This document shows positions 6 to 19,813 of a DNA stretch of 48,393 bases, piece after piece. This stretch comes from Klebsormidium nitens. Taxonomy: Eukaryota; Plantae; Klebsormidiophyceae. Location: positions 1 to 48,393 of the forward strand of contig DF236974.1 in NCBI GenBank assembly GCA_000708835.1, read 5' to 3'. The notes beneath the pieces are model-generated. The model worked only from the letters and a program-made list of their open reading frames with translations, did no database searches and was not told the origin of the DNA. Position 1 is the first letter of the stretch; the number at the start of each line of letters is the position of its first letter. The position numbers were made by a program, and so were the translations under genes.

Positions 6-25
6 GTAGCCATCAGGAGAGTTTG
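6..25 (+). repeat. Left terminal inverted repeat GTAGCCATCAGGAGAGTTTG
   Basis: Reverse complement of 19794-19813 is GTGGCCATCAGGAGAGTTTG, one mismatch. Confidence 0.9.
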
Positions 26-232
26 AAGTGTACTGTTTTGAAGAGTTTGGACCGGTCGAAACTCCGCTAAAGTTTACCGACCGTCCGCGTACTTTCGGGG
101 AGTTGCCACCGACGTCAGCAGCATGACGTCACTTTAAATAAAGCGAGAATATCAGCGATTTCTAGTAAAATAATAAAATAATAATAATAATAATAATAAC
201 AATAATAAAATAATCAATAATTAAAAAAAAAT
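26..232. repeat. Left subterminal region: AGTTT/AAACTC motifs, TGACGTCA palindrome, AAT-rich tract
   Basis: Repeated GAGTTTG/AAACTC/ACTTTCGGGGAGTT motifs at 26-105, TGACGTCA near 124, and an (AAT)n tract at ~164-232. Confidence 0.65.
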
Positions 233-1157
233 GCAAAGTGCTAGGGAGAGTCACTACTACGTACTTACCGCCCCACCGCCGCGTTTCAAGGAGCCTGTTT
301 GTATTTTAGAACTTGCGTGTGGCCTTCCGACACTCTTCCCATGCACAAATAGTGACGGCTACCTCTCATTATGTTTCAAATGATACCACATGTTCCTTGG
401 TTGACCGATAGGCTGATGTGTTGGCTTATCTGGAGTGCATCATACTTTAGTATGCTCGCTATAGCAATGAAGCATCTTATTGTGGCCTCTCCCCCTCTAT
501 CATGATTACATTCTACTTCCTATTCACACGGAACGAAAGAGGACGAATCATTCCAATCGCCTTTCGCCTAATGCCCTTCTCATCCACTTTTTAGAGCGCG
601 CACTCTCTCCCTGCATTATGATTGTGCTCGCGTGATCCTTCATGTTTCTCAAAAAACTCCTTCAAAGACAGAGGTCAATATCTATCTATCTATTTGTCTT
701 TCATTACCTTCGTTCCAATTAAGGGGCGCCATTGTAGGCCGCTTCGAGACAGGAGCGATACAAAATGAATTGTGCGCCCGTTTTAGCGTCAAACCTTTCT
801 TTCATCGAACCGCTTATACTCAATTGTCCATTCTCGAACAAACGTTGATCACTGCACGTCGCAACTACGTCACGTTGGTTGTCATGTTGCGCAACCCTTC
901 TTCGAAGACCTCTATGCATCCTCTCCCAAGTTATGGGTCACCCACTCTCTCCTTCGTTCCGCCTTGCGCTTCGAACAACTCTTTAATAATTCGAATTTAT
1001 TTAATTGTTCGATTACGAACAACGTTTGACGACCCGCCGCAGTCACGTCACTCGGGCCGCCTTGTCGCACGACCCCTCTTTAGAGACCTCTACGCATCCT
1101 CTCCCAACTAACGGGTCACCCACTCTCTCCTTCGTACCGCACCGCGCTTCGAACAAC

Positions 1158-1929
1158 NNNNNNNNNNNNNNNNNNNNNNNNNNNNNNNNNNNNNNNNNNN
1201 NNNNNNNNNNNNNNNNNNNNNNNNNNNNNNNNNNNNNNNNNNNNNNNNNNNNNNNNNNNNNNNNNNNNNNNNNNNNNNNNNNNNNNNNNNNNNNNNNNNN
1301 NNNNNNNNNNNNNNNNNNNNNNNNNNNNNNNNNNNNNNNNNNNNNNNNNNNNNNNNNNNNNNNNNNNNNNNNNNNNNNNNNNNNNNNNNNNNNNNNNNNN
1401 NNNNNNNNNNNNNNNNNNNNNNNNNNNNNNNNNNNNNNNNNNNNNNNNNNNNNNNNNNNNNNNNNNNNNNNNNNNNNNNNNNNNNNNNNNNNNNNNNNNN
1501 NNNNNNNNNNNNNNNNNNNNNNNNNNNNNNNNNNNNNNNNNNNNNNNNNNNNNNNNNNNNNNNNNNNNNNNNNNNNNNNNNNNNNNNNNNNNNNNNNNNN
1601 NNNNNNNNNNNNNNNNNNNNNNNNNNNNNNNNNNNNNNNNNNNNNNNNNNNNNNNNNNNNNNNNNNNNNNNNNNNNNNNNNNNNNNNNNNNNNNNNNNNN
1701 NNNNNNNNNNNNNNNNNNNNNNNNNNNNNNNNNNNNNNNNNNNNNNNNNNNNNNNNNNNNNNNNNNNNNNNNNNNNNNNNNNNNNNNNNNNNNNNNNNNN
1801 NNNNNNNNNNNNNNNNNNNNNNNNNNNNNNNNNNNNNNNNNNNNNNNNNNNNNNNNNNNNNNNNNNNNNNNNNNNNNNNNNNNNNNNNNNNNNNNNNNNN
1901 NNNNNNNNNNNNNNNNNNNNNNNNNNNNN
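1158..1929. other. Assembly gap (N run)
   Basis: Ns within the satellite array. Confidence 1.
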
Positions 1930-2478
1930 AACAAAGTTTGACGGCATGCCGCAGTCACGTCACTCGGGCCGCCTGTCGCACGACCCCTCTTTCGAGACCT
2001 CTACGCATCCTCTCCCAACTTACGGGTCACCTACTCCCTCCTTCGTACCGCACCGCGCTTCAAACAACTTGGATAAAAAATCGAGTTTATTTAATGTTTG
2101 GGTTTGAGCAAAGTTTGACGGCACGTCGCAACCACGTCACTCGGCCCGCAATGTCGCACGACCCTTCTCTAGAAACCTTTACGCATCATCTCCCAACTTA
2201 CCGGTCACCCAGTGGGCACCCAGTCTCTCCTTCGTACCGCACCGCGCTTCGAACAACCTTTCCTATTAACCGGTTATCTTTCATTGTCCATTCTAGATCA
2301 AAGTTTGACGGCACGCCGCAACCACGTCATTCGGCCCGTCATGTCGCGCAACCCCTCTTTCGAGACCCCTACGTGTCCTCTCCGCCACTGTTCGGTCACC
2401 CACTCTCTCTTTCTTATTGCACTGCGTTCGAACAACTTGGATAATTAATTGGTTATATTTAATTGTCTCATTTGGAAC

Positions 2479-2895
2479 NNNNNNNNNNNNNNNNNNNNNN
2501 NNNNNNNNNNNNNNNNNNNNNNNNNNNNNNNNNNNNNNNNNNNNNNNNNNNNNNNNNNNNNNNNNNNNNNNNNNNNNNNNNNNNNNNNNNNNNNNNNNNN
2601 NNNNNNNNNNNNNNNNNNNNNNNNNNNNNNNNNNNNNNNNNNNNNNNNNNNNNNNNNNNNNNNNNNNNNNNNNNNNNNNNNNNNNNNNNNNNNNNNNNNN
2701 NNNNNNNNNNNNNNNNNNNNNNNNNNNNNNNNNNNNNNNNNNNNNNNNNNNNNNNNNNNNNNNNNNNNNNNNNNNNNNNNNNNNNNNNNNNNNNNNNNNN
2801 NNNNNNNNNNNNNNNNNNNNNNNNNNNNNNNNNNNNNNNNNNNNNNNNNNNNNNNNNNNNNNNNNNNNNNNNNNNNNNNNNNNNNNNNNNNNNNN
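2479..2895. other. Assembly gap (N run)
   Basis: Ns within the satellite array. Confidence 1.
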
Positions 2896-3981
2896 CATTC
2901 TCTCTGAGTGATGGGATCACCCACATCCTCCATGTATACCGCACCGCGCTTCGAACAAACTTTCCAAAAACCGCTCTTATATTATCTCCCTTCTCAAACG
3001 TAGTTTCACGGCACACGACAGCCTCGTCACTCAAGCACTCGTCTTGTGCGGACCGCTCTACGAGACCTCTACGCCTCTTTCAACTTATATGTCGCTCGTT
3101 CAATCCTTCATATAATGGCCCGTCGTTTGAACAAACATATAAACGATCCGCACTTATTTTATTTTCCATTTTGGATCGAAGTTTCTCGGCATGCAACAAC
3201 CACGTCCCTTAGGCCCTATTCTCGTGCGGACGGGCCTTTTACCGTTCCAAACCTCTATGCATCCTCGTCCAACACATGGTCATCAGAAACCTTGATGGAA
3301 AACTGCACTGATCGCTCGAAACGGTATTTTATTTCATCGCCCGCTTCAGAACAAACTTTGACGACACGCCCCAACTTTGTCATTGAAGCTGCCATGTCGC
3401 ACCACCCCTCTTGCGAAAGACTTCTCTTCACCTATCAACGTATGAAACACTCGTTCTCTTTTACTTTTCGTTCGTTGCTTCATTTTGATGAGCAATATAG
3501 TGACGTCGACATGTATCATGCGTGTTAAAATTACTAATATTGCCAACACCGAAAGACACGCCATCAATTGCTTTCTTGTTTCCCTTAGTAACAAACTGTC
3601 CATTCCAAGCATGTTCATCATTGACGCCCAACAAGATAAACGTATTGCATATCATTCCTTTACTACCATCTATACGAAGTTGTTACTACGACCAGCGTAG
3701 AACATATACGGCAAGATCATTGTGTATTCCTCTGAAACAAAAAAAAATGTCTCCCGATCAATGCACACTAACTAGGCATGGAAAATGCGGCATTGTACGC
3801 TTTGTTAAAGTCGCATGACATATTCATATTTACATGGTGCTCTGTTCAACGTGACCCTTGTCGCCGCTATTCCCTAGCTTCAACCTACGATACCTGCTAA
3901 ACTGCGCTCGGTTCTGCTGGGCGTGAACTCATAGCCACGTTGGCCTTAGTCGCTACATCGGCAACGCAGTCTTTCGGTGCA

Positions 3982-4834
3982 CTAACCCGCCAGCGCCGAA
4001 TGTGTCGCCGGCTTTGACGTGATCCGCATCCACTCCGCCTTGTTGAATGCAACGGCCAACAACAGAGGGTCGTGCCTGCCGAATCCCAAGACCTTGATCA
4101 TAATGGCGTAGATGTGCTTGCACCACGCAAACGCCTTCCGATTGTCCGCCATCATTCTCTTGTACCCCGCGCAATCGCATTCGCACACCCTCTTCAAAAC
4201 CACTTCGTAGAGCTTGTCCGTATCTGCCCCCGCCAACCCCGTTGTCTTGATCATGAACTTCCGCGTTGGGTCTCCCGCAGCGTCCACTCCCATGGCCTCC
4301 GCCACAACGATTCCCTTGTACACGCAACCCCTCACCAGGTTGTCCTTCATTTCCTTCGTAGCCTTCGTCCTGTTCCGCACCGGCCTTCCCTTCACCAACC
4401 CGTCCCCCCTATTCAGCATTTGACGCTTCGCCTCCTTATCTGCCTGTTGCTTCGATCGCACTCCCGCCCCAGAGCCTCGCCGATCCTCTACATTCCCCTC
4501 TGCAGGCCCAATTCCGGCGTTCCGAAAAGTCTTCGGCCCGAGCTTCAAGCTCTTACATGGCAACGCCGCACCTGGATCCTTCAGCTTTGGAAGACTCTCG
4601 TCGTACAAAACCCGTTCCTCCCTTAGCTTCGCCCGATCCCTCGCGGTCAACTCCGTTCCCTCGAACAACGGAAACACATGCGTGTCGGGGTTCGGCAAAA
4701 CCTCCTCTGCTGCTACAGAATAATTCAACCCCCAGCACGTCCTGCTCGCGCATTTTTTCAGTCGCCCGCAGTACGCGACCCTTCTTTGCGGCGCACCATC
4801 CACCTCGAGCGTCCGTGCCACGCGAAGACCCACC
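3982..4834 (-). CDS. Transposase last exon with SWIM zinc finger
   Basis: YEVVLKRVCECDCAGY...WCKHIYAI fits CxC-xn-CxH. Acceptor TGTAG at 4835-4839. Confidence 0.85.
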
Positions 4835-7800
4835 CTACAATAGCCAAAAGAAAAGCTAATTCATAAACTAAGTGGTCTCCTCGTGCCTCTGATTGGAATA
4901 CCCAATCACGATCAAAGGAACGAAACAAACAGATCACCAAAAGCAATGACACGCTGCAACAATGATCAATTCGCAAGTGTGGGTTTCAAAATAAAATTGG
5001 TTCCATTCACTTACTTCATGAGCACCACGTTCCCCAACCGCCCGGCTCTGTTCCTCGCGACCAAGGGTGTGCAACACGATGTGTATCCGTAGCCCGAATG
5101 CTTCGAGCCACAGCAAATGGCCGCATCGTAAGTTTTTAACCGCGCTAATCCCCATTGCGTGGAGAACGCCTTGGCGCCCTGAAAATACTCGTCCGGAACT
5201 CGCTGTTGTCTGAGTCTGGCGCCCGCGGCTTCTCTCCCGTCACGAGCCCTCTCATCATCGCTTTCCACCACCTCCTCCTCCTCCTCCTCTTCCTCCTCCC
5301 CGTGCGCTTCCTCCTCGCTTCTTTCTACCTCCTCCCGTCGTCGGTTGTTTTTCAACTCCTCTTCCTCCCTCTCCAACTCCTCATGCAGCCTTGTAATCTC
5401 ATCCAGGTCCTCCTCGTCCTCGTCTACAAACTCGCTCTCCCGCCTGCTGCCACTCCTCTTCCTCCCCTTGTTCCTTTCTCGCAGCCTCTCGAACTCCTCT
5501 GCTTGTCCCGCTATGTCTTCCTCCGTCAAGTCTCCCATCGACTCCAATACATCCTTGTGAAACCCACTACCACCGACGGCTTCCTCTCCCTCTGGACTTG
5601 ACAACCGCCCCTTTTTCCTCCACCTTTCACTCCTAATGGTATCCGCCCTGTGAGTCCCCTCCTCCTCATCGCTGTCCCTTCCTTCCATCTCAGTCCGCCT
5701 CTCTGCCCCCTCCGCTTCCCGTCTCCTCTTGTTCCGCGTCTCGATCCGGTCCGTCCCGACAGGGTCCGTCTCGTACCCCCCCTCCTGCACCCTCCTTGCA
5801 AATTCTCTCTCTCCTTCTTGTACGCTACCCCCACCTCGCAGGGTTTCCCGCATCTCTTCCACACTTCTTCTCCACTCTCCATTTCGGCGGCGGTTGTCCG
5901 ACAAGGTCGGTCCTCTCGCCGGCTTCGCCAACGCTTCCTTCCTTGCCCTCGCGTCAGACATTTGGAGCAGCATGTTTGCGCCATTGACAAGAACCGCCGC
6001 CGCGATATCCAACTGCATCTTCTTCCCCCCAAGCCCCCTTAGGAACGACGCGTGAGCCGACTCCGCGATGTTAGCCCTCGACTCGAACCCCGTCTCCTCC
6101 TCTGGATCATCCAAACATTCCTCGTCCCGATACGCTACCAAGCGAAAGCCCCTGCACAAACGAAGTGTGTACATAAGAGCACAGCGGATTGTAATTTGCT
6201 ACCGAGCCTCGGCAGCTCGACGCGATTTCAAGGCTGCGCAGCATGTAACCCCCTGTGGTATAGGGAACTTATACGAGTCAACTGGGCTTCCCGTCTTTCT
6301 ACCGAGGCTCGGTAGCAATCACGTTTCCAAGGATTAGTGCATGCTACCGAGCCTCGGTAGCATGCACGTTTTTGGGCTCCATAATGCGCGTCACTAAATT
6401 AATATGGGCATTTAGGGTTTCTGGGTTTTTGGTATTTAGGGTTTTAGGGCTTCAAGGGCTTTGGGATTAAGTGATTTAGGGTTTTAGGGTTTCAGTGCCT
6501 TGGTCATCGCAGAAATTAAGAAACGAACTAGCGCAATTGGCAAGCATAATCATCATTTTCCGGCATATCTTCAAAGCTACGCAATGGGTAAGCCATCGAT
6601 GAGATATTTCTCTTATGTTGGACACAATATCGTATCGAAGTCCGAGTCGCACATACGCTTCCTCCTAACTCATGTACACTCAAATCAGCAAAAAGACCCA
6701 CCGTTGCAGCCAATACTGTAGCCACCCCTCCATCAGCAGCGCGTTCTCCCACGTGCTGCACTTGTCGTTGTAAAACGTCATCAGCTCCTCCGCCTCTAGC
6801 TCCACGTCTCGTTGCGACGCAGCCCCCAATAGGAGATTGCACCTCAGCTTGTGTTCCTCCCTCCACGCTTCCGGTACGTTCTCCCTCTCGTGGCGTCTCC
6901 GACACTCGTGGAAGTGGAACGCGCAGGACACCACCTGTCCTCTCCCTTCCGCCCGGAAATTCTTGAAAGCCTCCTCCGTTGCTCTCACTGCCCCTTCCGC
7001 CGAGTCCAGCATCAGTTTCTTCGGGTTTACGATGTGCGTCTCCACCTTCTCGCTTCCGTTCTTTCCCACGTACCCCTGCGATCCGAGCCGCTTCCATGTC
7101 GCCAAGACCTGCGCCACCGCCTCGTACGATTCCGATTGGATGAACGCCGAGAACACCTCCAACAGCTTGCGCGCGGAGTGATCGTAGACCAGCGCTGTCC
7201 ATCGGTACCACGTTTTCGCAACTTTGCTGCCGTCGCAATACACCATGTTGTTCTGCAGGTCCCCCCTCTTCGACAACCTTCTAGATGTGTCCAACCCCGA
7301 TCCAACCCCCTGCGTCGACATACAAAAGATCATCGGCACCGCCCCGTCCGTCATGCGCGTCTGTCCTGGGAGTTGCACTTCTTGGATTTGATCGAACGGC
7401 AGTGTCCGCATCATCTTGATCAGCCCTTCGTCTCCTCCCCTCAACGCGCCCCCGGCTCGTCCCGCCCTAGCTTGCTCGACCCACTCCTTCAGCCTCCTCG
7501 CGTTTTGAAGGGGGAGCAACTTCTCCACCAACCTGCAATATAACATGTGGTGTGTGTATCAACCAAGCGCGTGAGATCCTACTATAGTCTTCGCCCCTAT
7601 CTTTGTCTTTCCACTCCTCTGCTCTAATCCGACATCAACGATACATGCATTCAACACAAGTTGCACTGCGCTATGAAGATTTTACTCTCTAGTTCAATCC
7701 AAAACAATAATCTGCTTAGCGCAAATTCACTTATGTCTAAAGAAAATGCATCCACTTACTTTTCCGCGCAGTCTTTTCCGGGGTTGTCCTCCATCTCATC

Positions 7801-10405
7801 CAGGATCGCCGCCACCGCTACCGCCGTCTTCGCGCGCGACGGCGTCATCGAACGGTCCATCCTCACCATGCTCATCACCTGCAGCTGCCTCTCANNNNNN
7901 NNNNNNNNNNNNNNCATGATTCTTGACTGACTGAACGCAGGCAGAAACAAGACTCTGGAATCTTGAAGGATGTCCTGAGGGACTTGTCCAACAAGAGAAA
8001 AAAAGTTGTCTTGAGCAAAAAGACAGCAATTTTTCTGAGCTGCGCCATCGCTTGAGAACGCCTGCTCTCATGGTTTCCGCACATGTTAGCTGATCGTGTG
8101 TAGTTATCCTGCCAGCTCTCTGCATATAGGTGGCCAACCATCACACCCCGGCTCGTCCCGCCCTAGCTTGCTCGACCCACTCCTTCAGCCTCCTTGCGTT
8201 TTGAAGGGGGAGCAACTTCTCCACCAACCTGCAATATAACATGTGGTGTGTGTATCAACTTAGCGCGTGAGATCCTACTATAGTGTTCGCCCTTATCTTT
8301 GTCTTGCCACTCCTCCAGTCTAATCCGACATCAACAATTCATGCATTCAACACAAGTTGCACTGCGCTATGAAGATTTCATTCTCTAGTTCAATCCTAAC
8401 AAGAATCTGCTTAGCGCGAATTCACTCATGTCTAAGGAAAATGCATGTGACTTACTTTTCCGCGCAGTCTTTTCCGGGGTTGTCCTCCATCTCATCGAGG
8501 ATCGCTGCCACCGCTACCGCCGTCTTCGCGCGCGACGGCGTCATCGATCGGTCCATCCTCACCATGCTCATCACCTGCAGCTGCCTCTCATCCGCATCGC
8601 TCTTGCTCTCCAGCATCCCCAAATCGTGGTTGTGCTTCCCCATGTAGCAAAACGCTACTTCCTTCTTGTTTCTCACCGTCCACTTTACGGCCTGACACGT
8701 GTCCGACGAATGCTTCGCCTCGTGGTCGCAGTGAAAGCAGATCCATTTTCGCAGCGTCCCCCGCATCTCAAACCCCGTCGAGTTCTCTTTTCCGAATTGC
8801 TTCTTGTACCCGCAATCCCCGTTTACACACGTCATCCCCCCAACGCACTTCCAACTCCTAACAGGCTCCCCGTTTACCGTCTTCATCTTTGTCGTTTGGC
8901 CCCCAATCCAATACCTGCCGTCCCTCAACTTTCTTCCCAAACACACCTCCGCATCCCTGACCAACACCCTCTCCCCATCGATCGCCCCTTCCAGACTTTT
9001 CACTCTCTCCGGTTTCGTTCTCTGTAAAAGTAACTTGAGCGCGTTCGTCACTTGGATCTTCCCGCTCAACAACACTGCATCCGTCACTATCTCCAGTTCT
9101 ACCCTCTCGTTTTGTCCCGCCTCCTCCTTTGCCGCACTCTCTCCACCCTCCGCCCCTGTCACGCTCTGTCCTGCCTTCGCCCCGGTATCTCTCTGGCCCC
9201 CGTCTCCCTCCCACGCTTCTCTCATCTCTCTTACCAAATGCTCGTCTACTCTTCCTTCCCTTCTCATCTCATGTTCATCCCTCGTAAAAATGCCTTTCGC
9301 CCACCGATCAATTCTCTCATTATGCTGGTTCTCTCCTCTGTTCTCTGCTCTCTCAGCTCTCTCTTCTCCCTCTCCAGGTCCGCTACCCTTTCCCTTTACC
9401 CCTACCTCGCTCTGCACCTCCTCGTCTTCTTGTTCGTCCCTCAATCCCTGCTTTTGGGACTTTCTCGCCGCACCCAGGCCCGGTGCCTTCCTACTACCCA
9501 CCACGTAGCAGCTTCTTTCGCCGAATACTCCCGTCGCCGTCGGCCTCGCCCTACACACGCCTGGCTTGCCTACGAGCGAGACACTCGGTCTAACAACCGA
9601 CCCGAAAGAAGACGCCGCTGAATGGAAGCCGGTGGGGGCCGTACGAGCTTACCCGTGCATCGCATTCCTCGCAACGCCTCCTGCTACACCCCTCGCTCCC
9701 CCTCTACCTAACCCCAGACCCCCACGCTGTTGCTTCGGCTGCGCCTCCATCACGTACTTTCCCGCTCCCAACCACCATACGTACTCCATCAGGATCCAAC
9801 GACGGCGACAACCTCACAGGGTCGTCACTTGCGCCCGGCTTCAAGATCAAAGTTCCAACCCAACCTTTGGGAAGGAAATGCGTAGTCACCTCTGCCTTGG
9901 AGACGATGCTGTAGCCTTCGGAGTTCACCATAGACATCAACGGCTCCTTGGTAATCGCGGCAGGGTCGGGGAAAGCCACCATAACCGCATTGGGGACCAG
10001 AACTTCATCAGGCGCCCCTAGCTCTTCGCTCACCTCCTGCTCCACTTCCTTTTCTCTCTTCTCTTTGTCCTCCCCTCCGTTGTCCTCCCCTCTCATCGAA
10101 ACCCCATCTCCCGTGTTACCCTTTGCCGCACTGTTGGAAGTAGTTCCTCCTTCAGCTCCATTGCCAGTCCCTGGAGCCGGCTCTTTGGAATCGGCGGGCG
10201 GCGCCTCCGTCTCCACGCCCTTCACATCCTTCTGATTAGTGTCTTCGAGCGTACCCAGAACACCCGTCGGTGCCGAATGCGCTCCATGATCTTTGGTCGC
10301 GCTCGATGCCCCGACAACCGCAGCTACCGCAGCCACGGGAGCCGAAGTCGCAGGCCGATTCCTGCTTGCAGGTGGCCGGACTCCCAAAGGGGCCAAGGAT
10401 GCCAT
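3982..10405 (-). CDS. MULE/Mutator-family transposase, multi-exon; the 5' part has an unresolved frameshift
   Basis: Exons join in frame at GT-AG sites: ...8456 (or the 7760 copy)/7532-6702/6151-5015/4834-3982. Motifs: VYCDG (D1), LMLDSAEGA (D2), SCAFH (CxxH), RANIAESAH (E), C-terminal SWIM, and an N-terminal Cys/His finger. The start at 10405 is tentative. Confidence 0.85.
5015..6151 (-). CDS. Transposase exon with third catalytic Glu and a long acidic/charged region
   Basis: RANIAESAHASF resembles the MULE TN..ES.H motif. It splices in frame from the preceding exon (LQ-R-GFRLVAYR). Confidence 0.8.
6198..6367. repeat. Palindrome cluster (3 copies of CTACCGAG-N-CTCGGTAG) in a transposase intron
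   Basis: Copies at 6198, 6299 and 6343. The last extends to a perfect 15-bp-arm inverted repeat at 6337-6367. Confidence 0.95.
6411..6493 (+). repeat. Degenerate telomere-like (T)TTTAGGG tract in a transposase intron
   Basis: Five exact TTTAGGG (6411, 6435, 6443, 6475, 6483) with degenerate units between them. Confidence 0.85.
6702..7532 (-). CDS. Transposase core exon (MULE DDE domain)
   Basis: YCDG...LLEVFSAFIQSESYEAVAQVL...PKKLMLDSAEGAVRATEEAF...SCAFHF. Confidence 0.9.
7450..8590. repeat. ~445-bp direct duplication (7450-7894 / 8146-8590) of a transposase exon-intron-exon junction
   Basis: The two copies are near-identical with scattered substitutions. They are separated by a 20-N gap and ~230 bp of unrelated sequence (7915-8145). 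Confidence 0.9.
7895..7914. other. Assembly gap (20 N)
   Basis: Ns between two copies of a ~445-bp duplicated segment. Confidence 1.
8456..9589 (-). CDS. Transposase exon with WRKY/GCM1-like Cys/His zinc-finger region
   Basis: WKCVGGMTCVNGDC...WICFHCDHE...CQAVKW...YMGKHNHD. Donor GTAAGT at 8455. Confidence 0.65.
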
Positions 10406-10778
10406 CTGCAGTATTAAAAAGAATTCCCTTTACGCCCCGGGTGGAACGCTTCATGGAAACGTCCTACTATTCAAACAACATAGCAACGGAGCACTCAGAT
10501 GGATGAAAGACAGCGTCCTACCTTTCGACGATAGTTTCAGAGCTAAACTTCTCTGCAAAAATAATCTTAGACCCCACATGTTCCCCCGTGCAAGTGTCAA
10601 GATTACTACTGAGTCTAGTTCTATGTGTGCACGGAAACAACAAGAACAGATTCAAAACTGCTGGCACAATCAATGATGAACTAAGTGTACGATTGAAAAA
10701 TATTCTCAATATGCTATGCTCCCAAGCGCCGGTATGGATAAGCAAGGAGATACTTGGATCAGAATTCCCTATAGCTAA

Positions 10779-12474
10779 CTACCGAGTCTAGGTGGCCAGG
10801 GTCCAACGGCGAACAGTCACGGAACGGATTTGTAAACGATTAAATACGCTACTATGCTACCGAGCCTCGGTACAGCGTGACCCCGCAGGTTATCAAGCAG
10901 CTCCACCATCATTACAAGGTCTTCACATACCGAGCCTCGGTAGCAGAATATTTTTACCGGCTCCAACAGCTGACCATTACCGCTAACGGTTACCGAGCAA
11001 CTAGAGTCTTGTGAAAAGGAACCATTATCGGGACCATTATCGCTAGCTCATATTTCAAAAAACCCCCGGAAAAGTCTGTTTCTACCGAGCCTCGGTAGAA
11101 ACCGACCGCAAGGGACCGGCACAAAATATAGCTACAATGTTAAAAAACGGGACGGGGTTGACCGTTACCGCTTACCGTTACTGCAGGATATCGCCGTTTG
11201 CTTGCGCCCCTTATCCGTCCTCACAATGCCCCTTTACAATTAACTTGGATTATGACGGGACAACCAACGACCACCCGGCGGCGTCGCTTGTGACAAGACC
11301 GCGGGAAATCTAAAAAGATTGACGGGACAAGGATCTGAGTCTATACACTTGGTATTGACTATGATATTTGTATAATCTTTAGGCTTCCTCCAATGTTGGC
11401 CCTCTCCCTGTGGGCGCGGCACAATTTACTGAAAATTACACTCCGATATGGAGCATTCTGATTGGTTGTTTGGATGTGGGCATCCACCACGGCGTTGGAT
11501 ATTAACCATAGGTTTGGATTTGGTAATCATTGGACCATCCCTTAGATCCACCCATTCCCATTATCGTCAATCTGCGTGGCCAACCGATGGCCGTCCGATA
11601 GGGTCGGGTTATCAGATGACACGCCCTACGGCCCACAGAATCGCGATATTTATCGTTACACACGCTTTTAACACTGCTCATATAACAAATACAGTCGGTA
11701 CTTCATGGATACCACTGTAACGCTTTCCCCCGGCCGCATCGTTTCCCGCAATCGGACTGGAAATTGGTATTTGTATTAGTAAAGGTAGTGCCCGGTAGAA
11801 ACGATGGCTACCGAGATCTCGGTAGCATTCGTGCAGAACTTCGGAAGCTTCATTTCTTTTTAGTGAGCAACGGAGCGGATTTTCTTGGGCGCCCAAGAAA
11901 AAAGTCAACGCAAGTCAACGCTGGAGGGACGGTGCGAATCAAGGTAAAAAGGCCTTTTTTTCTTTTGTTTTCTCAGAGTCGAAACACTTCAACTCTGCGA
12001 CGTTTTCTAGAAATCCCTGTGTTTTTCTGGGTTTTTGGTTGCCTGGTGTTGCTACCGAGGCTCGGCAGCTCACGCTTGTTCAAGTCACGCTGATTCGTTG
12101 CTACCGAGCCTCGGCAGCTCACGCTTGTTTGAGTCACGCTGGTTCGTTCCTACCGAGCCTCGGTAGCATTGCCCTGTAGTAGCCTGCAGCGGCCTTTTTC
12201 TTCAGGAAGCTACCGAGCCTCGGTAGCTTCTGCTGTTTTTAGTTGACTATCCTGGTACCTTATTCTTACGCTAGTCGATAGCAACCGAGGCTCGGTACCC
12301 AACGATATCTTGAGTTGTTACTTCTCGCGAGATCCTCCATTGCTGCCGAGCCTCGGTAGCATTGCCCCATTGCAACAGCCGCAGGCAGATTCGCTGATAA
12401 TCTACCGAGCCTCGTCAGCAGACGCTGTTTCTTACCTTGGCCGTACGGTGGCCAGTCGCCACCGAGCCTCGGTA
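10779..12474. repeat. Central palindrome field between the divergent genes (~13 copies)
   Basis: Copies near 10779, 10856, 10928, 11081, 11807, 12051, 12100, 12150, 12209, 12281, 12342, 12402 and 12458. Confidence 0.95.
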
Positions 12475-13920
12475 ATTTTGCTTCGTTGCAGCTGCTGTTG
12501 GTCGTGTTCCGTTGAACTGAACCAAGTGCGATATTTTGCTGCTCCTTGCAGACGATTCTCAGATGATCGGAAGTCTTGGGAAAGCCGTCCTTTCTAAACA
12601 AAGTGGGACGTGGGAGTGGGGCGAAAAGAATAGTCTTGACAGTAGGTCTGAGAGCACCGTCGAAATGGGAGGGGCAAAGGGAGGGGCAAAGGGAGGTGCA
12701 AAGGGAGATGCAAAGGGAAAGGGTGGGCTTAAGAGGGTGGCAACTGCGGAGGCCGAGGGCAGTGGCAAGGCGGCTAAGAAGCAGAAGCCCGAGGCCGCTG
12801 GTGGGGCTGGACCAGTAGTGCCAAAAGCCAAGAGGAGCGGAGCCGTGAAGAAGGACGGGACGCCTTCGAACGGTGGGGAGGAGGAGTTGACGGAAGTGCC
12901 GCCCGCGCACGTCAAGGTCACCACCCCGGGAAAGATGAAGGCGGGTGCAAGCACTCTGGGGATTCGGGCTGCGCAGGGGGTCCTTTCGAAGCTGGAAAAG
13001 ACCTACCTGCAGACCACCCTCCAGGAGCAGATCAAAGATTTCGTCCCGGATGATCTGAGAAAGATCAAGCCTGATGGGATAGTGACCATCCCCATTGGGT
13101 ATCTCTCGACCGAGGACGAGATGATCGGAGGGGAGCTGATGTCCTTCAACCCGCGTCAGCTGAACGCAGACGGAGTGGCGCGGATCCGGCAGAGGTTCCG
13201 TATCAATGGGTTCGACACGACGAGGTCCATCTTGACGGGGGTCGTGTCGGTGAGTAGGTTGGTTTTGTTTGTAGAAGGAATGGTGGAATGAGAGGGTGAT
13301 ATTGTGATGGATATTTTGCAAGACTTTGGTGTTTATTGGCGACCATTGCTTGTAAGGAAAGATGCACAAGTTGCGAGAGTTGTAGGATATGGATGCTTGT
13401 GATTCGAATGACAACGCACCTTCAAACGGAACCAATCTGACTCATCATGGGGATCGAATAATGTTTTTCTGTTAACATTGCAGTACAACGGGATGACCTT
13501 CCCGATGGACAAGAAAATGCGGGATAGCTGGGACGAGGTGGAAAGAGAGAACATCAAGGATTGGAAGGAGTATTTGGAGAAGACGAAGGGGACAAGCCCT
13601 CTGAGTGCGTGGACGCTGAAGCACATCGCAGGAGAGGGGAAGTCGTGGGGGAACAAAGTGAACGTGTCCGACGGCAAGCACAGGTGAGTATAGATTGGAG
13701 ATGATATGAGAGAGTATAATAGGAGTATGTCTGTCCAAAAGGTGGCTCGTTTCTCATTGTAGGTAGTTGCTACGGAGCATATGTAGGAATGCTGAGGAGA
13801 GGATTGGTGGGTTTTGTTGCTTTTGTCACTGCTGATTTTTTATATAGCTGACAGGTTTTGTTAAGGATGATGGACAGCTGTGCTCTGCTGGTAGGCTGAA
13901 TAGCACGCATAGTGGCACGT

Positions 13921-14086
13921 TGCTACCGAGCCTCGGTATAATAGCATAGAGCAAGCAAAATGACGCCGTTGCTACCGAGCCTTGGTAGAATAGCATAGAG
14001 CAAGCAAAATGACGCCGCTGCTACCGAGCCTCGGTAGAATAGCATAGAGCAAGCAAAATGACGCCGTTGCTACAGAGCCCCGGTAG
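13921..14086. repeat. 49-bp tandem repeat (~3.4 units), each unit carrying the palindrome; intronic
   Basis: Palindromes start at 13922, 13971, 14020 and 14069. Confidence 0.95.
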
Positions 14087-14817
14087 GATAGCCTACAACA
14101 GAATACTATATGTAGTATTGGTTATCTTGCGGTGTGGGATTCTCAAATAGTTTGTTCTTTCCCATTTTCAGGGTGGAAGCGGTGAGGGAGGAACAGAGAG
14201 CGAATTTCCACTCCCTGAAGCTGGACCCCCAAGGCAAGAGGCACCCGATGGTAAAGGTGCAACTGCTGGACGCGTCATCGGACATGATGGGGAAGCTGCT
14301 GGCGTCCTGCAACGCAATCAACGAGCAAACCTCGCAGGGCATCCAGAAGCAAACCATCCCGCTCAAGATCATGACTGTCAGGAGCTGTTGAGGAATCTCA
14401 CGGCAGACCAGGTGGACGAGCGGTTCCCGCTCAAGGTGAGTATAATTAGGATAATACAAATGTAGAGACTGTGAAATTGTTGCGCTGAAACTGGTTCACA
14501 GGCAATTTGCGTAGGTGTTGTTGATGCTGCTGCAAGGATGCAAATGCTGGATCCATGGAGAGGCTACGAAGGAGTTCACATTGCGAGGTACTCATAAACT
14601 GGTCTCAAACGTTCTGCTAACATCGAATATGATATAATGCAGACGCTGGAGACGATGTCGACAATGGCGGGCAACAAGCTGAACCTAGAGTACGTTTTCT
14701 ACAAGCCCCGTGGGGTCGGACAAAGTGGAGAAGATCGCCAAGCTCCAAGTAGCCATGATGGTGGACCCCGTCTTCGAGTAAGTTTGCTTCTACTTTTGTG
14801 ACGTTGATTCCGTGCTT

Positions 14818-15166
14818 GCTACCGAGGCTCGGTAGCAAGCAGAAAAGCTCTTCCAAACAGTTGACCATAGTTCAGTCTACTTCTTCAACGACGGCCATTC
14901 TAGACAAGAACCTGCTTGCTACCGAGTCTTGGTAGCGAGCAGATCTTTAAGACCACAGCAAAGCATGTGTAGGGGCTCGTAAAAGGAATGATAGTCTTGG
15001 TTTCTCGATTGCTACCGATCCTCGGTAGCGGGACTCGTTATAAGGGGTATATAGTGCATCCAACCCTTCGAGACAGAGGGGACTCCGCTTCAGATCAGTC
15101 CGTTGTTACCGAGCCTCGGTGGGGTGCATCCAGACAAATAGTACTTTGCTACCGAGGATCGGCAGC
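14818..15166. repeat. Intronic palindrome cluster (5 copies)
   Basis: Copies near 14818, 14918, 15011, 15107 and 15148. Confidence 0.9.
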
Positions 15167-17213
15167 ATGCTGTATTTGAGAATCTCGTGAAGTATCTGAT
15201 AGAGAGATTTGGCAGTAGCTAATGTGATTTTTCTGCGCTTACAGGGACGACGTGGCGGGCTGGCAAACGGCGGACAACCCCCCCGACTCCACGCCCTTCG
15301 CTTCGCTGTGCAACACGAAGCAAAGCGAGATGCGGAGGCTCTGAACGGCAGCCAACCACGTGGCGGGATCGGGGTACGAGAAGGCGCTAGAAGCCATCAC
15401 CCAGGACACGGAGATCGCAGAGGGCTTGGGGAAGGAGGACCTGTACACGCTGGTGGGTACGGGCTTGAGTGAAGAATGGGTGGAGGAAGCGGTGTGGAGA
15501 ATCTTTGTGAAGAAACCGGCGCAAGCGGAAGAAGAGGGGTTCGGGAGGTCGTTGGAGAAGATACGGCAGATGTGCAAGGGGTTGGGGTACGCGTACAAGG
15601 TCATGAGGGAGGGGCTGCAGTGGCTGCGGAGGCTGAAGATCCTGAAGGATGAGCCGGTGTCGAAGGACGGGTCCCCAGACATCTCGTGGAACTTCGCCTC
15701 AGCGGATGTGAAGGCGTTGTTCCGGGTGAAGAAGTCGGTGGAGTACCCGGAATGGGTCATGAGGCTGGCGTTCAGCAAAACGAAGAAGGGGGCGCACTTG
15801 GCGCGGTACATGTTCGGGCAGGGGCAAGAGTGCAAGGAGAAGGCGAGCGCCAAGACAAAAGAAGAGCAAGGACGTGGAGGAGGCGGGCAAGAGGTCGGTC
15901 TGCCAGCACCTACAGTGGCTATTCTCGCCGTCGGAGGGTTGGACGGACGCGCAGAGCCTGTACTCGGGGGTGCCGGAGGCGCTGGACCTGCGTAAAAACG
16001 TGCTAGAGGCGATTGCGACTGGGGCTGTGTTCGGTGGAAACTGGGAGGTTGAATCAGCAGCGGCGACGGTGTACAATCTCGAGGACGAAAAGAAGCTCGG
16101 GGTGCCGTTGGAGAGGGACTGTGGGGGGGAAGTTCCGGAGGGACTGATCGAGCTTGGGAAGGAAACGGGGCGGGAATACATCACGAGGAAGGTCAGAGCG
16201 TACAAATTGAACGTTCAGATTGGAGTGGAGGAGGTCGCAGAGGAGGGTCGGGAGGGAGAGGGGAAGCAAAGCCTGTCCATCAGCTCGACGGAGGTCTACA
16301 ACGTGGTGGAGGAGTCAAACTCCTTCGTTTTGCCGTCGGTAGCGAAGCTGGTGGAGGGATTGGAGTACCTGTGGCTGCTGGACGACGGAGACTGGGAGTC
16401 GAAGAAGAAGGGGGTGGACATGGTGTGGTTCAACGTGCCGCTGCCTCGGTGCGTGCTTACCGACGGGGAGGCGGCAAAGTATGACCCGCGGCAGCAGCGG
16501 CCGTGGGAGACCGACGAGGTGCTGGGGGCGCTGGAGCTAGCGAAGAAGCTCCTAACGCCTGCGGGGGTGCTGGTGGTGGTGGCACCTGTGGGGTTCCCGG
16601 AGTCGGCGTTGGACGGGACGAGTTACACTGGCCTGGTCACCGCCGTGAGATCGACTGTCACGTTGGTGATGGGTTTCAAGAAGTCGAAAGTGAGAATGTC
16701 CTATAGTTGAATAATAGTTAGCCGTTCTTGTTGATCAATTGAGAGTTGGATGTTTGTGGTTAACACCAGAGGACAAATGAGCACAACTTATTCCTAGAGT
16801 AGTGTGTTCTGCTGGTTTCCTACGGCATGGCGAAATAGGGCTATTGGAAAGATAGCAATTGAACGTTGCTTCCGACTTGCTTGCAGGACACGACCAAGCA
16901 CGTGTACGGCTGCCAAGGCAACACGTTCAACGTCTACTACGTGACGCTGGCGGCGTCGGACCTGACGTCCATGGTGAAGGGAAGTGCGTGGAGGGACACT
17001 CTTGAAGGGGTACCTTTCCACGGAATCTTGAAGAAGCACGGCTCGTACAAGGTACGGTCCCGTTTCTGCGTGATACAATGTTTGTCTTCCCTTTTGGAAT
17101 GTAAGTGTCATTGGCCTGAGAGTGTCTTGGGTTTTAGGGTCATTAGTTCGAATCTTGAAGGAGTGACTGTATTTGGGAACGGCATGGTTGTGCGCACTCC
17201 AATAGCGGTCCTC

Positions 17214-17427
17214 CTACCGAGGCCCGGTAGGAAACGGATCTTGTGTAGTCCGTCTGATAGGGATCGTCCTACCAGCTACCGAGGCTCGGTATAAACGGAT
17301 CAGGCGAGACCAAACAGCAGTGCTGGAAGGAGGCTCGAAACTGAGGCATTGCTACCGAGACTCGGTAGCAATCTGCAAAGAATGTTGTTGCTCTCTTTTA
17401 CTCGTCATTGCTACCGAGGCTCGGTAG
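17214..17427. repeat. Intronic palindrome cluster (4 copies)
   Basis: Copies near 17214, 17275, 17351 and 17410. Confidence 0.9.
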
Positions 17428-18552
17428 TTAAGCCTCCTTGGACTGAGCTGTGAATGATGTTGCCTGTTATGCTTTAACCGGAAAGTTGATTATTACCTCT
17501 CTGCCGTGTCATGTTCAGCCCTACTCTTTCCTTGAGTGGGAGGCCTCTGGCAAGGGGCTGTCGACCAAGATGGTGACGAGCCTGCTCGGGGGGGTGCCGC
17601 CGCGCGGTGGGACTGCCGTCGTGCTCAACGCCAAGGGGGGCAGGGAGGTGTCGGCCATATCAAAGGCCGGCTTAAAAGTCCTTGCGACGTACTCCGAAGC
17701 AAAGGAGACGTTCCCTGGAATGCTCGAGGATTCGAAGACGGGGAAGAAGTGGGGGGGTACCGACGGGTCAGCAGCAGAAGACCAGGTGGAGAAGGGGCCG
17801 ATAGAAAAGGCGCCGACGGAGACGGCAGGAGCAGGCCAGTCGAGGGGGAAGGAGAGGACCGCGGAGTATGCGGAGTCGGTTGCCGGAGACGCGGGCAGGG
17901 ATAAGTCTGCGGAGGATGTGGATGAGGAGAGGGCCGAGATCGAGGATGAGCTTGCGGAGGCCGCGGCGGAGGGTGAGGAGGGCGAGTCGGAACCTGCAGA
18001 GGGTGAGGATGAGGAGGGCGGGGAGGAGCCTGCAGAGGGTGAGGAGGGGACAACAAAGGAGAAGGGCGAGGAGGGTGCAGGAGACAAGGAAGGGGAGAAG
18101 GCCGCGGGGACGGCGCAGCCGAAGGCAGCTGGGGGCTCCGGAGAGGCAGGCGAGTCAATCGCCGGCAGCTCGGACCCCTACACTCTAGAATTGAAGCGTT
18201 TGGACGCTGAGAAGGGAGAGTAAGGTTGATTGTAGAATACATGGTTGTGGAGTAGGGCAGATGATGTGCTGGGTAAAGAGGGTGTGATAGGGGATGGATC
18301 AGAAGACATGGAAGGAATAGTTTTTTGGCAGGGCGTCATGAATGTCATGACATGGATGAACGTGGACATTGTTGGAGCTCAAATATTGTGGCTCACGTAA
18401 TTTGAATGAGATACTGTCATTCAGTGTCGCACTCCAAATGCACATATATCGTGCGCTTCTTCACGGTTAGTTAATATAACGGGCCAAATTATGTATGTGC
18501 ATACTTTGAAGCACTAGTATTGAGTGCTTTGTATGGCCTTCGCTTTGTGCAG

Positions 18553-19187
18553 CTCGTACGCACGAGGCCAGCGGCAGGCGCAGCCGGCCGCACCAGGCCA
18601 GCGGCACGCTCAGCCGGCCGATCTTGTTGCGAGATAGTCAGGGATACATCAGGGGAGAATGTATCCAAGCGGTTCTAGACTGGCTACAATCGTGTAAGCC
18701 CGGGTTCCGGTGCCCGGAGTTTTACATCTGTAGCGCGCGAGCGGATGGCCTGGATGTGGAGAAGGTGTGGGACAGTTTGAAGAGGAAGGTACAGTAAGGA
18801 GATGTGGAGTGGCAGTGCGTTGGCACAATGGTGAACCTGGGGAACATCCATTGGGCTGCGCTCGTAATCTACCGGGGAGACAGGGCAGTGGAGTACTACG
18901 ATCCGTTTGGAACTCCGCCAGAGCCCAAGGTCCGAGAATTGCTCGAAGTCCTCGCAAGAAGAGTGGGGAGAAATGTGAGCAACGGAGCGCCGTTCGGGGT
19001 GAGGGTGAACAAGGCGCAACACCAAACCAGCCTAACGGAGTGCGGCCTGCACTTGCTGATCTTCGTGTACAGGAGGTCAACGAACAAGAGGTGGTTTGAT
19101 TGCACGACAGGCACGACGGGGTCAATGAAGGCCTTGAAAGCGTTTTCGAAAGTCATTTTTAGTGGAGAGGCCCTTTTCAATCAGTAG
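18553..19187 (+). pseudogene. Ulp1-like (peptidase C48, clan CE) cysteine protease with a premature stop
   Basis: LLRDSQGYIRGECIQAVLDWL...*...VNLGNIHWAALVI...VEYYDPFG...QHQTSLTECGLHLL gives a His-Asp-(Gln)-Cys set. In-frame TAA at 18795-18797. Confidence 0.8.
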
Positions 19188-19544
19188 AGTCGCCTTGGAA
19201 AATACTAGACAGGGGAATGCGTAACAGAATGTGACAAACATTGTAAGCACACACATTACCGTTTTTGGAATGATGTTCAACCATCAGAAACTATGATCTT
19301 GCTTCATTTGCGATGAATGGAATGCACGGGGTCTATAACCATCATGAAATGGGTGTATGAACATGAACGGGCTAACGGTCAAGTCTCGAACAAGTACATA
19401 CGAGTGAGGAATACCAAGGAAATACCAAGGAAACTGTTTAGCGCGGTACTGAACCGGCTAAACGGCCTTTGTTGAATATTGAAAGGACACTCAACGGTGC
19501 GGTTAACCTTGGGAGCATAGGGAAGCGGGGGCCGGGCCCGAAAG

Positions 19545-19570
19545 CCCTAAAACCCTGAAACCCTAAAAAA
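19545..19570 (-). repeat. Short telomere-like tract CCCTAAAA-CCCTGAAA-CCCTAAAA
   Basis: Three TTTTAGGG-like units on the minus strand next to the right AT-rich tract. Confidence 0.75.
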
Positions 19571-19571
19571 G

Positions 19572-19793
19572 GTAATTAAAACATTAATAATTAATTTTCT
19601 AATAATTATATAAAATAAAATGAATAAATCAAAAAATATTATAATATAATATAAATTAATGCTTTAAATACAATAAATGTCTTAAATTTGCTGAAGTTGC
19701 AAAATAGATGACGTCAGCACGTGCAAAATTTTGGAGAGTTCGCGAACTTTCGGAGAGTTTGCGGGGTTCGCAAACTCCCCAGATCTGGCCTGC
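19572..19793. repeat. Right subterminal region: AT-rich tract, TGACGTCA, GAGAGTT/AAACTC motifs
   Basis: AT-rich ~19572-19680, TGACGTCA near 19709, and GGAGAGTTCGCGAACTTTCGGAGAGTTTG plus CAAACTCC at 19733-19780. These are the same motifs as at the left end. Confidence 0.65.
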
Positions 19794-19813
19794 CAAACTC
19801 TCCTGATGGCCAC
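19794..19813 (-). repeat. Right terminal inverted repeat
   Basis: CAAACTCTCCTGATGGCCAC is the inverted copy of 6-25. Confidence 0.9.

Follow-up and report, generated by a model that had tools for sequence, protein, structure and literature searches.

Copy-specific escape of transposons from silencing is little known apart from the VANC proteins of the VANDAL elements of Arabidopsis, whose targets form tandem repeats that differ between related transposable elements (Hosaka et al. 2017, PMC5735166). In red algae, the protein PAG3 combines a ParB-like domain with a 2-oxoglutarate (2OG) oxygenase and adjoins tandem inverted-repeat arrays in Plavaka elements (EnSpm/CACTA), for which the analogy to VANDAL has been drawn (Petroll et al. 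2025, bioRxiv 10.1101/2025.02.11.637652). The 21.5-kb Sola1-1 element of Ectocarpus (Sola1-1_Ec32) encodes, opposite its transposase, a 1104-aa protein with ParB-like and DNA methyltransferase parts (Dinatale et al. 2025, PMC12477816), and chlorophytes have Dam-type methylases in fusion with a helix-turn-helix (HTH) of the ParB type (Iyer et al. 2016, PMC4738411). The red- and brown-algal cases of ParB-like self-recognition are so far predictions only (PMC12477816; bioRxiv 10.1101/2025.02.11.637652). Here we have analysed a stretch of 48,393 nt from the streptophyte alga Klebsormidium nitens (contig DF236974.1; hereafter the window), in which positions 6-19813 appear to be a ~19-kb Mutator-like element (MULE), a DNA transposon that is decayed, possibly mis-scaffolded and MULE-like at the level of its motifs. 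It carries a transposase gene, a divergently oriented accessory gene, an Ulp1 protease open reading frame (ORF) and arrays of a short palindrome.

The locus resembles Sola1-1_Ec32, when the two are compared by description, in being a giant (~20 kb) DNA transposon with an accessory gene divergent from the transposase, in the size of the encoded protein (1104 vs ~1200 aa), in the proposed order of a ParB-like N-terminus and a methyltransferase-like C-terminus, and in the idea of a protein that would bind and modify its own element. It differs in superfamily (Sola1 there, MULE-like here) and in having an extra all-alpha domain of ~300 residues and an Ulp1 gene. Moreover, the domains of the Ectocarpus protein are recognisable by homology, whereas here no library match was obtained and the catalytic and S-adenosylmethionine (SAM)-binding motifs are degenerate. 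With PAG3 the locus would share a transposon accessory protein that has a ParB-like domain at its N-terminus, inverted-repeat tandem arrays beside the gene across families, and the proposal of self-binding. PAG3, however, has a 2OG-dependent oxygenase as its partner domain and sits in CACTA, Zisupton or Fanzor elements, and symmetric repeat co-variation between families does not seem to have been reported for it. The likeness to VANC (Hosaka et al. 2017, PMC5735166; Sasaki et al. 2023, PMC10398659) consists in the MULE context, related plant MULEs having an Ulp1-type gene, and in short motifs that form non-coding tandem repeats differing between related families. The VANC motifs are nevertheless short and non-palindromic, VANC itself is small with no claimed relationship to ParB or methyltransferases, and its hypomethylation effect was shown experimentally.

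Bacterial ParB-parS systems and the ParB-domain proteins of phages and plasmids have in common with this locus a clustered palindromic site of ~16 bp, a box-I-like segment (..NPR..) followed by a box-II-like segment (..G..R..A), and clustered palindromes that vary alongside the protein, here in six families. The algal system differs in lacking a detectable box III, a recognised HTH and a ParA partner, in having an insert of ~55 residues between the boxes, and in being eukaryotic, intron-split and transposon-borne. Segments resembling motifs IV, V/VI and X-I-II of the beta-class N6A/N4C methyltransferases (PF01555, Escherichia coli YhdJ) occur collinearly, with weak statistics, but neither the catalytic tetrapeptide nor the SAM glycine loop is conserved in any of the six families. 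Plant MULEs that carry an Ulp1/C48 ORF include the KI-MULEs and VANDAL elements with VANB; the present element is likewise MULE-like with a C48 ORF, and differs in belonging to a streptophyte alga and in that Ulp1 was found in families A and C and not in B.

An earlier note on this DNA considered the combination possibly undescribed. In outline this does not hold, since ParB-like accessory proteins with methyltransferase or oxygenase parts, and inverted-repeat arrays, in giant algal transposons were published in 2025. New here are the streptophyte-algal host lineage and the MULE-like superfamily with Ulp1, an accessory protein that is extremely divergent, apparently degenerate in catalysis and endowed with an unmatched alpha domain, and an explicit series of symmetric palindrome variants across families.

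Palindrome arrays and their variation between families

The palindrome, CTACCGAG-S-CTCGGTAG, is a dyad-symmetric motif of 17-19 bp with a 17-bp core and a 7+1+7 architecture. Scanning the window with CTACCGAG-N-CTCGGTAG at no more than two mismatches returned 28 sites, all of them within 6199-17427. The number expected by chance was 0 (100 shuffles), and the remaining 28 kb of the window contained none. Twelve sites lie in the promoter region shared by the two genes, 13 in accessory-gene introns (3, 5 and 7) and three in a transposase intron, whereas definable exons contain none of the 28. This confirmed, with a nearly identical count, the earlier claim of ~29 palindromes confined to the non-coding DNA of the element. 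The leftmost 6 kb and the rightmost 2.4 kb of the element are free of palindromes. Within the arrays the spacing is 45-155 bp, partly in strict tandem units of 49 bp or 58-60 bp. The arrays, to which no strand is assigned, are located as follows:

6199-6360: three palindromes in a transposase intron, adjoining (TTTAGGG)n at 6411-6495
10779-12475: bidirectional intergenic/promoter region with 12 palindromes, four on the transposase side (10779-11098) and eight on the accessory side (12052-12475), partly in 49-bp tandem
13923-14086: four palindromes in a 49-bp tandem array, accessory intron 3 (motif scan)
14819-15165: five palindromes in the intron before exon E6 (intron 5), all five common to the related contig L006
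17214-17427: four palindromes in the intron before exon E8 (intron 7; motif scan)

A chance origin of the palindromes was rejected, given the zero expectation and a scan of 241 million metagenome records in which the motif turned up as a lone site in each of 47 contigs and nowhere as an array. As a separate observation, plant-type telomere-like repeats occur beside the palindromes of the transposase intron, (TTTAGGG)n at 6411-6495, and in inverted form near the right end of the element, (CCCTAAA)n at 19535-19568; they may be telobox-like regulatory motifs or relics.

The motif was shared, at matching types of position, by independent contigs of the same family (family A), namely L006 (eight exact sites), L009 and L010. 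In the intron before E6 the window and L006 have five palindromes in common at 89% identity, while the intron sequence around them is 41% identical; other introns show gains and losses of arrays. Each of six related families has a symmetric palindrome variant of its own with the 7+1+7 architecture, at equivalent promoter or intron positions. The variants are:

Family A (the window family): TACCGAG-S-CTCGGTA
Family B: TACCGAC-W-GTCGGTA, 42 sites
Family C: TACCGCA-N-TGCGGTA, 11 sites
Family D: TGCCGAC-S-GTCGGCA, 20 sites
Family E: TGCAGCC-N-GGCTGCA, 8 sites
Sixth family, weak: few sites of the TNCCGAC type

Each half-site change is mirrored on the opposite arm, and the half-site distance rises with the distance between the proteins. 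Related accessory proteins occur in at least five families, whose palindromes differ by one to four symmetric half-site changes, a natural variation that amounts to a ready-made test set for specificity swaps. The position that separates family A from family B adjoins the 1-nt centre and is thus unable to pair in a hairpin; the hairpin reading was rejected on this ground, and duplex DNA read by a symmetric dimer is favoured. From the pattern as a whole we consider it probable that the arrays are protein-binding sites of the element.

The accessory gene and its neighbours in the element

The accessory gene (plus strand) and the transposase gene (minus strand) are divergent, and the same arrangement recurs in the related contigs L007 and L009, which upheld the divergent gene pair of the earlier note. 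The features of the accessory gene in the window are the following:

12563-13249, plus strand: exon 1, a low-complexity N-terminus followed by the ParB box-I-like ..VTIPIGYL..FNPRQ.. (translation, alignment)
13484-13683, plus strand: exon 2 (labelled E3), ending in DGKHR, ParB box-II-like (family comparison)
14172-14780, plus strand: exons E4 (~14172-14435) and E5 (~14631-14780), with frameshifts near 14380 and 14710
15245-16689, plus strand: large exon E6, the all-alpha domain followed by the motif-IV-like ..VWFNVPLP.., with a stop at 15342-15344 and a frameshift near 15870
16887-17051, plus strand: exon E7, its junction with E6 confirmed by the K. subtile transcript P0001
17519-18223, plus strand: exon E8, motif-X/I/II-like ..AVVLNAKGGREV..KAGLKVLA..SE, an acidic tail and the stop codon (translation, alignment)

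The relative L006 yielded an intact version of the gene, in which canonical GT-AG sites join seven exons into one open frame of 1,201 codons closed by a stop; the copy in the window is broken. Every accessory exon is also conserved in a family of 46% identity (L001). The ratios of nonsynonymous to synonymous substitution (dN/dS) are 0.14-0.5 for the accessory exons and, judged from these comparisons, purifying selection acts on the gene. A Trinity transcript of Klebsormidium subtile (EukProt EP00243; 76% identity) was the closest protein relative of the large plus-strand exon, which makes a Klebsormidium-type streptophyte alga the most likely source. The gene is transcribed and spliced in K. 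subtile, where the transcript P0001 has the identical E6-E7 junction. An intron interrupts the Arg codon of the DGxxR motif (AG|G) at the matching position in families A, B and E (window 13682-13684; L006 1438-1441; L015 2600-2605), and this intron is therefore old relative to the family split. In the family-C contig L013 the accessory gene appears 5'-truncated, and the contig also holds Replitron HUH endonuclease and TIR-NB-ARC-TPR genes (8342-9088, 12850-14372).

We have searched for relatives of the accessory protein at several levels. Scans of the exon-level ORFs of both large genes and their relatives with Pfam, PHROGs, NCBIfam and PADLOC returned only Ulp1 and one sub-threshold SWIM match, and searches of the PDB sequences with single exons and profiles gave no match. 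A profile search of 1.84 billion representative proteins yielded 34 matches, all of them fragments of the accessory family, with neither a full-length spliced protein nor a link to a known family. No relative was found when metagenomes were searched for related loci with the family alignment, and a homologue search with the ParB-like ORF of L015 recovered only itself. The accessory protein is, by these searches, rare, lineage-restricted and very divergent. AlphaFold modelling of E6+E7 gave a confident all-alpha domain of ~280 residues with a predicted local distance difference test (pLDDT) of ~90 (L006 3205-4104; P0001 ~20-300; window ~15245-16150). As modelled, this domain may be a new fold, or may be the actual DNA- or chromatin-binding part of the protein.

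Remote similarity was assessed by aligning the spliced accessory family, in a query-anchored alignment, with profiles made from natural sequences. In every family, introns interrupt both the ParB-like and the methyltransferase-like part. In hhalign comparisons with 108 phage ParB domains, the segment ..IPIGYL..FNPRQ..GVARIRQRF..NG aligned with box I as a weak match, and after removal of the family-specific insert of ~55 residues VSDGKHRVEAV aligned with IVaGERRWRAA of ParB. The score was 24.3 (P 0.007, probability 5%), a value reached by none of 120 column shuffles (mean 12.9, sd 2.4); comparisons with the single sequences of F-plasmid ParB and SopB were not significant. At the motif level, families A, B and E show a box II of the form [DE]G[KRQA][HN]R with x-x-A behind it, where ParB has GERR, and a family-D pseudogene reads EGAHR without the following Ala helix. 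The CTP-binding box III (ENxxR) was not found after box II in the family alignment, nor was any clamp or spreading feature.

Against 42 relatives of YhdJ, a beta-class methyltransferase, the alignment was collinear over 207 columns with a score of 21.3 (P 0.03, probability 1.5%), which exceeded all 150 of 150 shuffles. In this alignment GADLVWLNVPLP corresponds to methyltransferase motif IV, LLTPAGVLVVVAP to motifs V/VI and SAKMV..AVVLNAKGGREV..KAGLKVLA to motifs X-I-II. The catalytic (D/N/S)PP(Y/F/W) is absent from all families, motif IV reading [NTQ]-[VML]-P-[LF]-P, and so is the SAM-binding glycine loop (FxGxG; DPFxGSG), the loop reading NA[KR]-x-G-x-E. These replacements are themselves conserved; the module is under selection and probably not a standard methyltransferase. 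The methyltransferase-like fold proposed in the earlier note is thus retained as a weak collinear alignment, with no library match and with degenerate catalytic and SAM motifs. Fusions of ParB with methyltransferases were uninformative as a guide, one of 114 phage ParB ORFs having a downstream [DNS]PP[YFW].

The transposase gene was read mainly by eye and by comparison between contigs, and comprises:

8458-10405, minus strand: N-terminal transposase exon(s), with a WRKY/GCM1-like Cys/His motif near the end (translation, L009 comparison)
6701-7537, minus strand: catalytic-core exon, YxDG...VYDH...SESxE...MLD...CxFH (MULE-type signature read by eye; dN/dS)
5443-6141, minus strand: middle exon, acidic and of low complexity (translation)
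3985-4860, minus strand: last exon, with a SWIM-type CxCx16CxH zinc finger (translation)

In related contigs the N-terminal exon is an unbroken ORF of 691 aa, followed by the core exon. The core pattern is typical of MULE/FAR1 proteins, and the core has a dN/dS of 0.10; identity of the transposases between families is 55%. The Pfam scan of the window recognised no transposase core, SWIM or N-terminal zinc finger, the MULE DDE core (PF10551) was equally without a match in L007, L009 and P0041-50, and the SWIM match in the family-B orthologue was weak (E 0.0033, 17.4 bits, below the cut-off of 19.6). Hence, the DDE-SWIM transposase of the earlier note stands on readable MULE-type motifs and the CxCx16CxH pattern, while a Pfam match to the core is absent and that to SWIM is sub-threshold. 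In families C, D and E a transposase was not found beside the accessory gene within the flanks covered, which are too short for a firm negative.

The Ulp1-like protease of the earlier note was borne out. Its ORF is probably a third gene of the element:

18510-19184, plus strand: Ulp1/C48 cysteine protease ORF (Pfam PF02902 match)

The PF02902 match at 18798-19184 had an E value of 2e-7 and 31.5 bits, above the cut-off of 20.7, and the triad is readable as His (NIHW), Asp (YYDPF) and Cys (TECG). In family C, too, an Ulp1 orthologue follows the accessory gene (L013 7018-7635), and the gene was not found in family B.

Candidate binders of the palindromes

From the arrays, their variation and conservation, and the selection and expression of the accessory gene, all of them observed, we infer who binds the palindromes and what binding does. 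A homodimeric DNA-binding protein encoded by the element would bind the palindrome arrays, and the binder would most plausibly be the accessory protein, acting through its N-terminal ParB-like region. By binding, the element would recognise its own copies and regulate either their transcription, at the divergent promoter, or, along the element body, their chromatin, as VANC does for the VANDALs. With the divergence of families, motif and binding specificity would change in step. The methyltransferase-like module, catalytically degenerate in appearance, would be expected to be a scaffold or a reader, not an enzyme. For the proposal that it is the accessory protein that binds, with an effect on the element's own regulation, we see the balance as even. 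The self-recognition that the earlier note envisaged between an element protein and its own palindromes gained support from the family-specific variants, the motif conservation, the selection and the expression, while its specific ParB-clamp mechanism did not. The fullest version of this proposal is tentative and, taken with all its parts, somewhat doubtful: streptophyte-algal MULEs might carry a self-addressing module in which a fast-evolving, strongly divergent dimeric binder derived from ParB, in fusion with a new alpha-helical domain and a dead methyltransferase scaffold, would read family-specific 7+1+7 palindromes across promoters and introns and protect or activate cognate copies only, as an independent or possibly ancestral counterpart of VANC. 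If the accessory protein is the binder, ParB-derived self-recognition would extend to the streptophyte lineage ancestral to land plants and to the MULE superfamily, and the locus would give a first handle on the recognition code and could supply compact sequence-specific DNA-targeting modules.

Several observations weigh against the accessory protein in this role. The curated libraries found no ParB, HTH or methyltransferase domain in any exon, and the HH probabilities of the ParB and methyltransferase alignments were just 1.5-5%. The AlphaFold model of the ParB-like piece was of low confidence (pLDDT 43.6) with meaningless Foldseek matches, and the all-alpha domain of E6 had no structural match in Foldseek searches of the PDB and BFVD. 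Of the ParB/Srx motifs of the earlier note there remain the segments resembling boxes I and II with their hhalign P of 0.007, set against negative results with Pfam, NCBIfam, PADLOC and the PDB and the poor model. The window copy itself is dead. The confinement of the palindrome to the element applies to the 48,393-nt window, a narrower scope than the host genome. Furthermore, the transposase has a zinc-finger-like N-terminus, and the accessory protein and the transposase both diverge between families, so that the co-variation does not separate them as binders.

The transposase is the main rival, one that we regard as unlikely and still ahead of the others. Through its N-terminal WRKY/GCM1-like zinc finger it would bind the palindromes, which would then be transposase-dependent enhancers for the divergent promoter of the element itself or internal sites of transpososome assembly. 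The Cys/His motif of its N-terminal exon is of the type used by MULE/FAR1 proteins for DNA binding, the densest arrays lie in the bidirectional promoter, and the transposase too diverges between families (55% identity). Moreover, a 2026 preprint reports sequence-specific activation of cognate copies by the AtMu1 transposase on its own (bioRxiv 10.64898/2026.08.24.746577), a result that also counts against the accessory protein. If the transposase is the binder, the locus would back the view, recently claimed, that regulating transcription is intrinsic to transposases. The terminal inverted repeat (TIR)/subterminal GGAGAGTTTG, a site that the transposase requires, is however unrelated to the palindrome, and families A and B, with their different palindromes, have kept this TIR core. 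No palindrome lies less than 6 kb from the left end or 2.4 kb from the right end. Together, the conserved GGAGAGTTTG and the palindrome-free ends make the palindrome an unlikely site of end recognition or transposase cleavage-docking. In addition, the N-terminal zinc finger was not recognised by Pfam.

Two further readings seem to us remote. In one, the accessory protein would be a true ParB CTPase clamp that loads at parS-like palindromes, shuts when CTP is bound and slides on the element, or an active DNA methyltransferase that marks its own copies. This could draw on the weak collinear similarity to the ParB N-domain and the beta-class N6/N4 methyltransferases (score 21.3, P 0.03), on a palindrome that is parS-like in size and symmetry, and on the similar-sized protein (1104 aa) with ParB-like and methyltransferase parts in Ectocarpus Sola1 (PMC12477816). 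Yet box II reads DG[KRQ][HN]R and not GERR, no ENxxR box III is visible, the forms [NTQ]-x-P-[LF]-P of motif IV and NA[KR]xGxE of the SAM loop occur in every family, and the library searches were all negative; clamp loading at the palindromes, as the earlier note had it, found no box III, clamp or spreading feature to rest on. In the other, to which we give equally little credence, the palindromes would not be sites of an element protein, being instead sites of a host factor, hairpin or small-RNA structures, or tandem repeats multiplied by slippage. Strict repeats of 49 bp or 58-60 bp do make up parts of the arrays, arrays grow and shrink from copy to copy, and a transcript could form a 7-bp stem with a 3-nt loop. 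Slippage, however, explains neither why only the 17-bp core is conserved between copies nor why the 7+1+7 architecture is kept in six families with symmetric substitutions, the unpairable position included, and the isolated single sites in 47 of the metagenome contigs, never in arrays, also speak against this reading. Recognition of the palindromes by the accessory protein thus remains the reading that we prefer.

Element ends, assembly and neighbouring genes

The earlier note described a TIR-bounded element, and the two ends were indeed found as 20-bp TIRs that differ by one mismatch:

6-25, plus strand: left TIR, GTAGCCATCAGGAGAGTTTG, followed by subterminal GAGAGTTTG-like copies to ~110
19794-19813, minus strand: right TIR, GTGGCCATCAGGAGAGTTTG on the minus strand, with subterminal GGAGAGTTTG copies and (CCCTAAA)n at 19535-19568 immediately interior
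823-3400, no strand: array of a ~178-bp satellite, left subterminal and non-coding, spanning the gaps 1158-1929 and 2479-2895
7450-8590, no strand: duplicated or rearranged stretch around the 20-N gap, with a 446-bp direct duplication

Extra GGAGAGTTTG-like subterminal copies are present at each end of the element, and a related terminus was found in family-B elements. The left flank outside the TIR amounts to 5 bases within the window, less than the 8-11 bp of a MULE target-site duplication. The satellite array has no visible counterpart at the right end of the element.

The gaps at 1158-1929 and 2479-2895 lie inside the satellite, which runs in register on both sides of them; no gene is therefore affected and these gaps are harmless. 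A further gap of 20 N (7895-7914) falls within the transposase gene. The stretch 8146-8590 is a copy, with 94% identity, of 7450-7894 (the 446 bp ending at the gap), and the two duplicates are separated by the gap and by 231 unrelated bases adjoining it (7915-8145). Continuity across this gap is therefore doubtful. The gap may be a scaffold join of two element copies, or the locus may be one internally rearranged copy. The single element claimed earlier has matching TIRs at both ends and may be a scaffold of two copies or a rearranged one.

The window copy is a pseudogene. The accessory gene has an in-frame stop at 15342-15344, where the homologues have Cys, and frameshifts near 14380, 14710 and 15870. 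The Ulp1 ORF is broken by an in-frame stop at 18795-18797, and the transposase has a frameshift near 9787 relative to the 691-aa ORF of L009. The feature is real and no artefact, though this copy is dead and the assembly is doubtful at one gap.

The strands are strongly asymmetric: over 1-10 kb the GC skew ranges from -0.2 to -0.37, over 12-20 kb from +0.2 to +0.27, and its sign changes near 11-12 kb. Such a flip fits two divergent coding strands that are purine-rich (Glu/Gly/Lys-rich). To the right of the element the window holds intron-rich host genes. Exons of a molybdopterin-binding oxidoreductase were recognised at 21725-23392 on the plus strand (PF00174, E 3e-24 and 6e-16), and the N-terminal exon of a host GatB at 44576-45001 on the minus strand (PF02934, E 5e-14).

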